Source: Tetramitus jugosus
Lineage: Eukaryota; Protista; Heterolobosea
DNA: 64,000 nt
Assembly: GCA_937625935.1 (NCBI GenBank)
Contig: OW569347.1
Span: forward strand, 620,001-684,000
Reading direction: 5' to 3'
The notes below the pieces were generated by a model. The model was not told the origin of the DNA. It was given only the letters and a program-made list of their open reading frames with translations, and did no database searches. A program made the position numbers and the translations under genes. Below are positions 24,712 through 28,616 of this stretch, in pieces. The first letter of the stretch is position 1. Each line of letters opens with the position of its first letter.

Positions 24712-25983
24712 TTACAATGGTTTAGCAGAGTAGATTGAACCTTCAATGCTGCAATCGTTGGAGCCTCTCTTGATCCAGAAGTATCCGTTCATTCCCCAGC
24801 TTGCTCCCCAACTGTTAGCAACAATCCAGTATGGCAATCCAGAGGCACTGTCTGTTCCCCAGCCGACAATTTTGATGGCGTGACCTGCTTGAAGAGAACC
24901 ATAAGTGTGAGTGTAGACACCAGACTTGTAGTAATAGAAATCAGAGTAGACATAGAATGAAGCATGAACTGGACCATTTGTGCTGATATCGGTCATCACA
25001 CTTGATAGATCAGTACTGGCGTACTTCTTGATGGTGCTAGAGTTTGCTCTGTATCTGACAAATGAACCAGATCCAGTGCAGGAGGTTGAGCAAGCTTTGT
25101 TGCTAGTGTCAGTTGAGCTGACATAAGGTGTGCATGTTTCAGTGGTAGTTCCAGTCTCGGCCAAGAAAGTCCATGTCTTGGACATGTAGCCACCCTTGCA
25201 AGCCAAGTTATAGCTGTTACAGTTGAGTTGGTATTGTGAAGACAGAACAACCTTGGTAGCACCGTTAGTAGCAATACAGATTCTATCAGCTAACACTTCG
25301 CCAGCACTGAAAGCCCAACATCCACCACAACTTCCTTGAGATTTGATAGCACCCATGCAGCTTGGCCATTTGGTACGAGCATCAAAAGAGGTAGCTGTTG
25401 CTTCTGTTGATGACTCGGAACTTGATGGAGTAGGTGCTGGGGATGGAGATGGAGATGGAGATGGAGTAGGTGATGGGGAAGGAGATGGGGAAGGAGATGG
25501 AGTTGATGATTCAGCTCCCAAAACCAAGTTTCCATTCACGCAGTGATACTGTGTTGGATTGTAGCAAGCTCTTCCACAAGCACTCATACCATAAGGACAC
25601 AATTGATCGTTTGAACAAGTGTACTGAGCAGCGTTGTAGCAAGCACCGTTACAACAAGAAAGAGTACCACAGTTGACACCGCCGCAGGTCTCTTGAATCT
25701 TTCTACTCTCAGGAGCAGTGGCATTGCTAAACATTTCTTCATCATCTTCAAGTTCAACGCCCAATAGATATTTGAGGTCTCTAACACGTTTACCTTCGAA
25801 TTCCCTATTGACACCAGCAGTCCATGAAGGATTGTTCAAGTTGATACGTTCAATTACAGCCTCATCGTCCAAGTCTTCAAAATCGTGATTCACACCTGCA
25901 ATGGATCTTGGAAAGGTACTTAATACAAATGAGCAATAGGAAAGCGCCAGGAGCAGAACAGCCAGTAAAATGAATGGTTTCAT
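24712..25983 (-). CDS. Cathepsin B-like papain-family cysteine protease with an inserted CBM52-like module and P/S linker
   Basis: Signal peptide; cathepsin-B propeptide (IERINLNNPSWTAGVNREF); catalytic QGSCGGCWAF, GHAIKIVGWG and YWIVANSWG. Cys-rich insert at ~25686-25518. Confidence 0.92.
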   Translation of the reverse strand: MKPFILLAVLLLALSYCSFVLSTFPRSIAGVNHDFEDLDDEAVIERINLNNPSWTAGVNREFEGKRVRDLKYLLGVELEDDEEMFSNATAPESRKIQETCGGVNCGTLSCCNGACYNAAQYTCSNDQLCPYGMSACGRACYNPTQYHCVNGNLVLGAESSTPSPSPSPSPSPTPSPSPSPSPAPTPSSSESSTEATATSFDARTKWPSCMGAIKSQGSCGGCWAFSAGEVLADRICIATNGATKVVLSSQYQLNCNSYNLACKGGYMSKTWTFLAETGTTTETCTPYVSSTDTSNKACSTSCTGSGSFVRYRANSSTIKKYASTDLSSVMTDISTNGPVHASFYVYSDFYYYKSGVYTHTYGSLQAGHAIKIVGWGTDSASGLPYWIVANSWGASWGMNGYFWIKRGSNDCSIEGSIYSAKPL

Positions 25984-26330: not shown

Positions 26331-28616
26331 TCATTGATTCTCATTGGGAATTGGAACAACGGGAAGGACATGATCGTACTGAGGTACGTTAGCTAACGTT
26401 TCACCGGCATCAATTACAGCAATTTCATGCGTATCTTGAAGCACTATCTCTTCTTGTTCCGCCTCTTTCTTCTTATCATTATTTGCAAGTTCATTTTTGG
26501 TCTCGGGCATCAGGATAACAAGAAGGATGGTACAAACGACGCCTACTCCTCCAAAGAACCAAAATGCTGGAGCTTGACCGATAGCAGACACAACAGGCAA
26601 GAATATCAATCCCAGAACCAAGTTCAGTGTCCACTGCAAGAACAGCAATGAGCTGACTGCAATCACAGAAACATCAGGTGTGAACAATTCATTCAAATAG
26701 GGGACATAATTACCTCCGAACAAGCCATTGAAACCAATGTAGTATATAGCAATCATTGCAATAGCACTATATCCTTTAGCTACTTGATTCTTAACAAAGT
26801 AAAGCAAGAAGCCCATAGCAATGGTTGCCACTGTCATAAAAACTGTTCCTGAGATGAGGACCGGTCTTCTTCCAAGTACATCACCAAGAGGAGCCAATAC
26901 TGTGGTCAGAACAATCCATCCACCAAGTGCCACAGATGCAATGATAGGTCCCTTTCTCTGTGTGAAACCAGCCGCCTTGAAAATGTCTGTCGAATAGAAC
27001 AGAATAGCATTGATACCGAGCCAGGTCATCACAACAACGGTAACAAACCCAACAAAATAACGCATAACATTCTTTCGATTACAAAACAGTGATCCCATCA
27101 CTTCGATGAAACGACTCTTTCTACTCTTGTTCTCTTCAATGTGTTGCAGGACATCGATGCTTCTCTCTGACTGTGGAACGTCGAAAGAAGGCAGTCTTAC
27201 TCCTTCCTCATCGATACTAGATGATCTACCAAGTGGTAATGGCGCACTACTAGAGTTGCCTCCAATCATAGGCCCTTCATGATGTATGTGGTGTCTGTGT
27301 TCAATCGAAGTATCAATAGTAGTGCAATGGATATTCTCCATTTCATAACTATCGGCACTGTGTCGACTACCCACTTGATTCTCACTTGAGAGGTGGTCTT
27401 GATGTTCAGCCATTGCTTTTCCATTGGTCTTTGTATTCTTGGTTGGAGTGTTAGCCGTAGAAATTCCGAGCTTGGTTTCGAGCCATACTGGACTTTCTGG
27501 TACCAGCAGTGTCATAAACATGAATGGAATACAGCAAATGTTGGTCATGGCAAACATGAACCTATAGTTATAGATGACGTCCATGAATGCCAAGCACATG
27601 ACATAACCCAACAAAATTCCCACAGCAATTCCCAGCTGTAAAGAATTTCCCATCATGCCCGCTCTTTTCGGAAAAAATCGAAAAGCCATCTCCGCCACCA
27701 TCATTGGCGCCGACACGATTGACATTGAATTACCCATGCCCACGACAACTCGAGTCAAATTCAAAAACCAGAACGTGGGACTGACAGCGCTCAGAATACT
27801 TCCAAGCAAAGTAAGAGCACCAGCAATGAAACTCGTAGTCTTCCTACCCAACCAATTCGACAGTACACCACCCAGAAGACAACCAATCATTCCACCAGCC
27901 ACATAGCAACTACTCACCAGACCCAACAGAAAACCAGTGGCGATCGATGTTCGTTTGCTATGAAACACTTTTGGATAATCACTTTGAATGGGTGATAAAA
28001 CTCCGGCCACGACAGACAAATTGTAACCATAGGTTGCGCCGCCCCAAAAGTTGAAGATGACCAGGAGAAGCATGAGCCATTTTCTCCTCACTTCCAAAAA
28101 GGAACGAAAATATCTTAGCTCATTGTGTCTCTTCATGAGGTGTGGCATAGAGAAACAACCTCGTTTACGATTATTTGAAGAGTGTGATGATGATTGTTGA
28201 TGCTGTTCATGTAATGCATGTTCATTGTGTTGATGTTGTTGATGTTGTTGAGAGGGAAGCATTGCCGCAACAGTGTTGTAATAAGGGTTATTACTCGTTG
28301 TGCTAGAAATGCTGTCCATGCTGGGTGAATGCGTCGTGTGAAAAAATTGTTGATCATCATCCAAAGCGGAAGAAGAATCAACCACGGCAGACGTAACGGA
28401 TGGAATGTTGTTGCTACTGCTGTTGTTGTTGATGTTGTTCAAGCTCTTCATGGGATAACAGTAGTCTTCACTTTGTTCAGTGATCATGACACTGTTGCTA
28501 TCATTGTTGTTGTTATTATTGCTGTTATTGCTGTTATTGCTATTGTGAGTGTTATTGTGATCACTGGCATCACCATTAGCTAATGTTGTGAGATGACTAT
28601 TGCTATCGCTCTGCAT
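26331..28616 (-). CDS. MFS sugar porter family transporter
   Basis: YGYNLSVVAG, GGVLSNWLGRK, MVAEMA, PESPVWL, GINAILFYSTDIF, DVLGRRP, MPETK; 12 TM segments with a long low-complexity N-terminus. Confidence 0.92.
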   Translation of the reverse strand: MQSDSNSHLTTLANGDASDHNNTHNSNNSNNSNNNNNNDSNSVMITEQSEDYCYPMKSLNNINNNSSSNNIPSVTSAVVDSSSALDDDQQFFHTTHSPSMDSISSTTSNNPYYNTVAAMLPSQQHQQHQHNEHALHEQHQQSSSHSSNNRKRGCFSMPHLMKRHNELRYFRSFLEVRRKWLMLLLVIFNFWGGATYGYNLSVVAGVLSPIQSDYPKVFHSKRTSIATGFLLGLVSSCYVAGGMIGCLLGGVLSNWLGRKTTSFIAGALTLLGSILSAVSPTFWFLNLTRVVVGMGNSMSIVSAPMMVAEMAFRFFPKRAGMMGNSLQLGIAVGILLGYVMCLAFMDVIYNYRFMFAMTNICCIPFMFMTLLVPESPVWLETKLGISTANTPTKNTKTNGKAMAEHQDHLSSENQVGSRHSADSYEMENIHCTTIDTSIEHRHHIHHEGPMIGGNSSSAPLPLGRSSSIDEEGVRLPSFDVPQSERSIDVLQHIEENKSRKSRFIEVMGSLFCNRKNVMRYFVGFVTVVVMTWLGINAILFYSTDIFKAAGFTQRKGPIIASVALGGWIVLTTVLAPLGDVLGRRPVLISGTVFMTVATIAMGFLLYFVKNQVAKGYSAIAMIAIYYIGFNGLFGGNYVPYLNELFTPDVSVIAVSSLLFLQWTLNLVLGLIFLPVVSAIGQAPAFWFFGGVGVVCTILLVILMPETKNELANNDKKKEAEQEEIVLQDTHEIAVIDAGETLANVPQYDHVLPVVPIPNENQ

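Follow-up and report, generated by a model that had tools for sequence, protein, structure and literature searches.

How does a papain-type protease come to carry, between its propeptide and its catalytic domain, a Cys-rich module resembling those of fungal beta-1,3-glucanases, and what might the protease do with it? The question is raised by one open reading frame on the reverse strand of the window, by which we mean the whole 64,000-nucleotide stretch of Tetramitus jugosus DNA that was analysed. The frame encodes 423 aa without internal stops and is colinear with its paralogs, so the gene is taken to be intronless. Its features are as follows.

24712..25983, (-): complete CDS with stop codon, encoding a 423-aa pre-pro cathepsin-B-like protease that bears the CBM52 module (ORF list, Pfam, colinear with seven paralogs)
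25918..25983, (-): putative signal peptide, aa 1-22, hydrophobic core LLAVLLLALSYCSFVLS (read directly; an N-terminal hydrophobic stretch is kept in all paralogs)
25687..25917, (-): short propeptide, putatively of cathepsin B type, aa 23-99, with R-K-I-Q-E-T at its end (Propeptide_C1, 31.2 bits)
25522..25686, (-): CBM52/Carb_bind module, aa 100-154 (Pfam 44.8 bits, AF2, Atlas TM 0.76, dN/dS 0.108)
25393..25521, (-): flexible linker rich in Pro, Ser, Thr and Ala, aa 155-197 (sequence, pLDDT <50, length variation among paralogs, dN/dS 0.225)
24715..25392, (-): C1A catalytic domain, aa 198-423, without an occluding loop (Peptidase_C1, 186.8 bits; cathepsin B as best PDB relative)

Cleavage of the signal peptide, placed by eye, would follow Ser22. 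The linker is likely to be O-glycosylated.

The protease and its module

To which group of proteases does the catalytic domain belong? Peptidase_C1 (PF00112) matches aa 198-418 at 186.8 bits in Pfam, and Q216, C222, H368 and N390 are invariant in an alignment of 12 homologs, which bears out the earlier note, where the catalytic Q/C/H/N residues had been read as intact. The protease is a member of peptidase family C1A (papain-like). Propeptide_C1 (PF08127) matches aa 42-78 at 31.2 bits, slightly below its cut-off of 32.7, and the paralogs score 17-30 bits; Inhibitor_I29 gave no match in the protease in Pfam. The best relatives in the PDB are all cathepsins B (E 1.8e-48), and the nearest named relative of the catalytic domain is from Naegleria fowleri. 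The subfamily had thus been named correctly as cathepsin-B-like, but the occluding loop is missing. When aligned to rat cathepsin B, the loop's His110-His111 pair falls on Thr-Ser, the first Cys of the Cys108-Cys119 pair is missing and the region is some 14 residues shorter. The loop is likewise absent from all close relatives in the alignment. We therefore class the protease, as judged from these alignments, as of the loop-less cathepsin-B-like type. With the His pair missing, peptidyl-dipeptidase (dipeptidyl-carboxypeptidase) activity would not be expected; the enzyme is probably an endopeptidase only.

What, then, is the module? The earlier note had placed a Cys-rich string and a (PS)n/T linker between the propeptide and the protease, and both are there: the string at aa 100-153 and, C-terminal of it, a (PS)n/T/A linker at about 155-197. 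The module (aa 100-154) contains 10 Cys and two half-repeats of the form C..CY.P..Y.C..G.L. Carb_bind (PF10645), the Pfam model of CBM52, has a curated cut-off of 25 bits; it matches aa 111-153 at 34.6 bits when the whole protein is scanned, and with aa 94-160 taken in isolation the score rises to 44.8 bits (E 1.5e-11). The paralog modules score 19-40 bits against the same model. An AF2 model of the module, built from 59 module sequences, has a pLDDT of 87 and consists of four beta-hairpins in two half-repeats; the full-length model is poor (pLDDT 63.6), the linker falling below 50. The best match to the module in the ESM Atlas is an Ascomycota cluster of Eng1 type, 'Endo-1,3(4)-beta-glucanase carbohydrate-binding' (80% PF10645), with a TM of 0.76 and an rmsd of 1.6 Å over 54 residues, both sides of this comparison being predicted models. 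The module had been called CBM52-like from its sequence, with a PF10645 scan proposed as the check and the lack of any profile or structural match named as what would speak against it. The scan places the match at aa 111-153 above cut-off, and the predicted fold agrees with the profile.

Solved structures are of less help. Foldseek of the module against the PDB gave nothing below E 0.2 and no convincing solved match, and no solved CBM52 structure was found in the PDB by Foldseek or VIA-align. Binding has so far been examined only for fungal Eng1 CBM52. Profile, predicted fold and genomic association all support membership of the CBM52/Carb_bind family, and the module may bind beta-1,3-glucan.

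How widely is the module used within this genome? In the 26.35 Mb (56 contigs) searched, Carb_bind/CBM52 matches number at least 61, distributed over about 43 ORFs. Five of these encode GH81 endo-beta-1,3-glucanases with a C-terminal module, the arrangement of Eng1, and two encode GH16-like proteins with tandem modules at the N-terminus. The module is also present on CBM96 proteins, on malectin/PA14/TIG/GSDH proteins, on one Kelch protein and on seven paralogs of about 520 aa in which it accompanies an unrecognised N-terminal domain. At least a dozen small secreted lectin-like proteins consist solely of 2-4 modules each. For the GH81 catalytic domains the nearest enzymes are bacterial (about 48% identity), among them some of Myxococcota and Flavobacteriales MAGs. 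Since malectin, PA14 and Kelch proteins also bear the module, its ligand could be broader than beta-1,3-glucan.

Paralogs and origin of the fusion

Is the module confined to one protease? The genome holds about 31 C1 peptidase genes, and in eight of them the module lies upstream of the catalytic domain, as judged by coincident coordinates. These eight form two subfamilies. Subfamily A consists of the gene studied here and paralogs on C43, C4 (41 kb), C42 and C7; the five are 76-82% identical and have the layout propeptide, module, linker, catalytic domain in common. Subfamily B (one gene on C38, two on C51) is about 40% identical to A; its members have an additional Cys-rich module before the propeptide and are without a long linker.

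The five A paralogs have diverged to a dS of about 0.9. Their dN/dS is lowest in the propeptide (0.078), followed by the catalytic domain (0.098), the module (0.108) and the linker (0.225). The module is thus under purifying selection, with a constraint that matches that on the catalytic domain. In the linker, the length of which varies among the paralogs, constraint is relaxed.

As to whether the module was inserted once or twice, a module tree of only 55 columns, and hence of weak resolution, groups the A modules with those of Kelch, TIG-PA14 and GH16 proteins; the B modules stand apart from A, with those of other TIG-PA14 and of CBM96 proteins. Judged by identity, the catalytic domain of A stands closer to nine paralogs that lack the module (47-55%) than to subfamily B (47%); monophyly of A and B together was, however, not rejected by the AU test (delta lnL 0.34, p 0.47).

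Does the fusion occur in other organisms? A word search of a library of 5.8 billion proteins found only one protein with all three domains, P0001, from a JGI metagenome. At 99% identity to the C43 paralog, P0001 represents the same species and no independent lineage. A word-index search limited to the module region (97-157) gave nothing beyond P0001. In a HMMER search of the whole library with a profile of the eight paralogs, the module was present, among the 150 best representatives, only in P0181 (subfamily B) and P0235 (a fragment of the C42 paralog). Neither the word search nor these 150 representatives, which cover close relatives only, yielded C1+CBM52 outside the species. Across the close relatives sampled, the CBM52 version appears to be confined to T. 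jugosus.

Other accessory domains are found on close cathepsin-B-like proteins. An ML (MD-2-related lipid-recognition) domain precedes the propeptide in P0186, P0188 and P0193, and in P0187 it lies at the junction of propeptide and catalytic domain (propeptide 32-67, ML 80-202, peptidase 209-425); saposin domains occur on P0191, P0195, P0196 and P0201. The cathepsin-B-like subfamily has therefore taken up binding modules more than once at such positions. The earlier note did not recognise the architecture as standard for papain-family enzymes, and that judgement holds in so far as no example was found outside the species among the proteins searched and C1A+CBM52 is not described in the literature searched. 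It does not hold for the underlying principle, in which a protease is joined to the module that its own organism uses for wall binding, for protease-CBM fusions are known in other amoebae (PMC6541295).

Did the module reach the protease gene by recent horizontal transfer from a fungus? The earlier note had raised horizontal acquisition of the module as a possibility, and CBM52 is indeed described almost only in fungi within the literature searched. Yet at least 61 widely diverged copies in about 43 genes are not what a recent arrival would leave behind; the protease paralogs are old, with a dS of about 0.9; their modules cluster in the module tree with those of other genes of the same genome; and the local GC profile is uniform around the gene, at about 0.44. 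We consider a recent transfer into the protease gene very unlikely. The number of carrier genes, together with the eight protease paralogs, points instead to shuffling of domains inside the lineage, which may nevertheless have received the module family by an older transfer.

Is the gene used in nature? The comparison with sequencing runs covered 3501 letters. Two runs, X1 and X2, extend over the spacers as well as the genes and so represent DNA of the organism. The soil metatranscriptome X11 has contigs 97-99% identical to the catalytic part of the gene and to both neighbouring genes, and no contigs on the spacers around the gene. This is a hint that the gene is transcribed in nature.

Fate of the module and its candidate targets

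If the module was inserted into a zymogen, does it stay with the enzyme once the propeptide is removed? Relatives without the module (P0002, P0005, P0006 from Naegleria fowleri and P0007 from Polysphondylium violaceum) align gap-free from the propeptide to the mature N-terminus IPxSFDAR. Compared with these, module and linker, about 100 residues in all, are a clean insertion between R-K-I-Q-E-T and (IP)SFDAR. The motif R-x-I-x-E-T is kept upstream of the module in both module-bearing subfamilies, and it resembles the residues with which the propeptide of the module-less relatives ends, and aligns with them. In procathepsin B, autoprocessing cuts in the corresponding stretch. The conserved junction motif, taken with this mode of processing, favours a cut upstream of the module, so that the active enzyme would retain it.

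On balance we think it probable that the gene encodes a secreted zymogen of cathepsin B type that keeps its CBM52 and is thereby held, when active, on beta-1,3-glucan surfaces, of which the organism's own (cyst) wall is the likeliest. The gene product would be the zymogen of a loop-less cysteine endopeptidase of the cathepsin B subfamily, into which a CBM52 module and a flexible linker were inserted exactly at the junction of propeptide and mature enzyme. Cleavage at R-x-I-x-E-T would remove the propeptide upstream of the module, and the module would remain at the N-terminus of the active enzyme, tethering it to surfaces that contain beta-1,3-glucan, where proteins embedded in the wall would be cleaved. 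The gene is one of eight paralogs, and about 43 genes, which form a lineage-specific set, have the module in common.

Might the module instead be a functional part of the pro-region, one that directs the zymogen to glucan or into a sorting pathway, or holds it there, and that is lost on activation? The mature protease would then be an ordinary free cathepsin-B-like enzyme. A cut within or after the linker would remove the module along with the propeptide. The module does lie N-terminal of the conserved mature N-terminus (IP)SFDAR; SSSESSTEATAT, just before SFDAR, is modelled as disordered and might be open to cleavage; and the extra Cys-rich module of subfamily B, preceding the propeptide, would go in ordinary processing. 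On the other hand, R-x-I-x-E-T stands upstream of the module in both subfamilies, in register with the propeptide ends of module-less relatives, and a Pro/Ser/Thr linker is the usual means of keeping a binding module on an active enzyme. Subfamily B, moreover, has only about 10 residues between module and catalytic domain. We regard loss on activation as improbable and continue to favour retention. The constraint on the module, equal to that on the catalytic domain, fits either reading.

What surface might a retained module address? Four ORFs of 1900-2100 aa in the genome encode beta-1,3-glucan synthases of family GT48 (FKS/callose-synthase type; 230-245 bits), and six-frame Pfam scans found no match to Chitin_synth_1, Chitin_synth_2 or plant-type Cellulose_synt; these negatives are soft, that of Chitin_synth_1 in particular, since that model is silent in all the control genomes too. 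Four GT48 enzymes and no detected chitin or cellulose synthase make the amoeba's own (cyst) wall the most likely substrate, and the chance that the protease acts there during encystment or excystment seems to us nearly even. The set of GT48 synthases, module-only lectins and module-bearing glucanases and proteases resembles what is found in other amoebae with cyst walls of 'fibril and lectin' type, where hydrolases and proteases share the wall-binding domain of the lectins (PMC6541295). A prey wall is plausible but less likely: together with the GH81 and GH16 enzymes the protease would remove mannoproteins and glucan from the walls of fungi, yeasts, oomycetes or algae, either in the phagosome or outside the cell. 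The same module on five GH81 and two GH16 genes agrees with this, and the GH81 domains, closest to bacterial enzymes, one of them from a Myxococcota MAG, would fit the lytic equipment of a predator as readily as wall remodelling. Proteases of cathepsin B type are typically digestive, and the organism is found in soil and groundwater metagenomes. Amoebae, furthermore, recognise fungal beta-1,3-glucan, and even a cyst-wall lectin may serve, for the CBM49 lectin of the Acanthamoeba cyst wall binds curdlan and laminarin too (PMC10880599). Against prey as the target stand the genome's own four GT48 enzymes and at least a dozen secreted proteins consisting of tandem modules only, which resemble the structural wall lectins of Entamoeba and Acanthamoeba (PMC6541295). 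Own wall and prey are not mutually exclusive; the protease may address both, or something else. Could the module, in that last case, bind another glycan or a protein, or serve as a disulfide scaffold, similar to granulin or galaxin, by which the protease is regulated or stabilised? Its sole match in the PDB, the best from VIA-align, is a weak one to granulin (Z 3.3), and plant C1 proteases of RD21 type have a granulin domain. Galaxin repeats come second in the ESM Atlas fold comparison (TM 0.68), and in the Atlas feature searches, where the whole protein led to plain C1 clusters, the only lead for the module was galaxin-like (0.81). The module is also fused to proteins with other sugar-binding domains (malectin, PA14, CBM96). 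However, Carb_bind is the only Pfam family to match the module, and does so above cut-off, while Granulin (PF00396) and Galaxin_repeat (PF24748) gave no match in the protein even at E up to 10; models of CBM52 proteins from fungi give the best structural match, and in the same genome GH81 and GH16 beta-glucanases bear the module too. We consider a ligand or role of this other kind quite improbable.

What would follow if the module does bind beta-1,3-glucan and stays on the enzyme? The protease would be aimed at a polysaccharide surface, and a simple, testable model would be at hand for how protists bring proteolysis to bear on walls. CBM52, of which only fungal examples have so far been studied and no structure has been solved, would be extended to protists, and the genome would offer dozens of natural module variants for work on structure and binding. 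The larger and more testable story is that of the genome-wide CBM52 set and the GT48 synthases. Taken together with such a protease, the four glucan synthases and the 43-gene set would predict what the cyst wall is composed of, and which proteins it contains, in a little-studied, Naegleria-related lineage of amoebae; cyst walls determine persistence in the environment and resistance to disinfection.

Relation to known systems

'Fibril plus lectin' walls are known from Entamoeba, where the fibril is chitin, and from Acanthamoeba and Dictyostelium, where it is cellulose. We suggest, tentatively, that T. jugosus may have reinvented the same logic: a cyst wall of beta-1,3-glucan, made by the four GT48 enzymes, would be organised by a CBM52 shared among lectins, GH81 and GH16 enzymes and eight proteases, and the junction of propeptide and mature enzyme in protist cathepsin B zymogens would be a recurrent docking point for accessory binding domains, for CBM52 perhaps twice and for ML elsewhere.

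How does the protease compare with its nearest relatives? The hypothetical proteins of Naegleria fowleri and Polysphondylium violaceum are loop-less protist cathepsin-B-like enzymes, among which we take those of Giardia also to belong. Like the protease studied here they are of C1A type (42-48% identity), with a short pro-region, putatively of Propeptide_C1 type, and no occluding loop. They differ in having nothing between the propeptide and the mature N-terminus, where the T. jugosus protein has about 100 residues of CBM52 and linker. The protist cathepsin-B-like proteins with ML or saposin domains belong to the same protease subfamily and likewise bear an accessory binding domain, which in P0187 (ML) occupies the very junction taken here by CBM52; the ML domain before the propeptide of P0186, P0188 and P0193 parallels the extra module of subfamily B. 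Their accessory domains, however, bind lipids, whereas the module of the present protease is of a carbohydrate-binding family.

Accessory domains are known on other papain-like enzymes: plant proteases of RD21 type have a C-terminal granulin domain and cathepsin C an N-terminal exclusion domain. These too are C1A proteases with an additional domain that is disulfide-rich or beta-structured. The likeness ends there, for neither domain is related in sequence to the module (there is no Granulin match), and positions and roles differ.

A close counterpart of the module is in Eng1 of S. pombe, which carries CBM52 (PMC9609564). PF10645 is common to both, and the arrangement of Eng1, a GH81 domain followed by CBM52 (in Eng1, C-terminal repeats), occurs five times in the T. 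jugosus genome. In the protein studied here, by contrast, the module is fused to a protease, lies N-terminal of the catalytic domain and is present in a single copy; and the GH81 catalytic domains of T. jugosus resemble bacterial, not fungal, enzymes.

Close counterparts of the fusion are found in other amoebae. Acanthamoeba castellanii has a metalloprotease with an N-terminal CBM49 and Dictyostelium discoideum a cysteine proteinase with two CBM49, and CBM49 has been proposed to localise the fused protease to the wall (PMC6541295). There, as in T. jugosus, the module of the protease is also found on lectins and glycoside hydrolases of the same organism. But CBM49 is a cellulose module and CBM52 a module of beta-1,3-glucan-binding type, and the lineages and the position of the module differ too. 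We conclude that the fusions of proteases to CBM49 and to CBM52 are independent inventions.

A predicted wall glucan and the enzymes that would make and cleave it

Which polymer might the wall of Tetramitus jugosus contain? Four GT48 beta-1,3-glucan synthase ORFs, each of 1900-2100 aa, are present in the genome:

L052, contig C21:205355-210319
L053, contig C12:313141-318114
contig C35, ~111 kb
contig C20, ~109 kb

Six-frame Pfam scans of the genome gave no match to Chitin_synth_1, Chitin_synth_2 or plant Cellulose_synt, the Chitin_synth_1 control having also matched no control genome. From these four ORFs and the lack of a chitin or cellulose synthase match we predict a wall of beta-1,3-glucan.

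The CBM52 module recurs in five genes at the C-terminus of a GH81 endo-beta-1,3-glucanase:

L032:1216-3756, contig C8, ~504 kb
L036, L039, L044 and L026, its four paralogs

Five JGI metagenome proteins, all carrying CBM52, are 51-62% identical to these GH81 proteins; one Logan protein, 66% identical, is without it. These six aside, the closest relatives of the catalytic domains are bacterial GH81 enzymes at ~48% identity, Myxococcota and Flavobacteriales MAGs among them. These matches suggest the fusion of a bacterial-type glucanase with a fungal-type module.

Further CBM52 genes and the predicted fold of the module

Seven paralogs of ~515-545 aa consist of a signal peptide, an N-terminal domain of ~420 aa and then two or three C-terminal CBM52 modules:

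L040:3653-5287
L042:2226-3806
L048:2319-3866
L013, L001, L002 and L015

Pfam gives no match for the N-terminal domain, and the seven may represent a glycoside hydrolase or lectin family so far unrecognised.

Two open frames have no ATG 5' of the module:

L049:2941-3756, contig C51, ~297 kb
L018, contig C8, ~632 kb

In L049 the module begins at residue 1 of the translation. These loci either have a 5' exon concealed behind an intron or are truncated copies.

The AF2 model of the protease's own module (m5a08452154da; window 25513-25692, minus strand) matches metazoan galaxin repeats with a TM of 0.68. Since some galaxin-like and Fibrobacter 'Fib_succ_major' clusters bear PF10645 annotations, CBM52 may be part of a broader beta-hairpin-stack superfamily.

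The protease gene, its relatives and lectin-like module proteins

Upstream of the protease gene lies one neighbour:

window 26331-28616, minus strand, 761-aa ORF

Judged by eye, its N-terminal region is rich in Asn, Ser, Gln and His, and its body, with numerous hydrophobic segments, has the look of a transporter of the sugar or MFS kind.

Close cathepsin-B-like relatives (library representatives P0186, P0187, P0188, P0193, P0191, P0195, P0196 and P0201) have accessory domains of the ML (MD-2-like lipid-binding) or saposin type. P0187 has its ML domain at the propeptide/catalytic junction, the position that CBM52 occupies in the studied protease.

The module also stands alone, in small secreted proteins:

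L019, L004 and L008, tandem cluster, contig C3, ~327.6-331 kb
L016, a further protein of this kind, contig C52

These four proteins of ~250 aa, nearly identical in sequence and with three CBM52 modules each, are similar to Jacob/Luke/Leo-type lectins, which have a structural role in walls.
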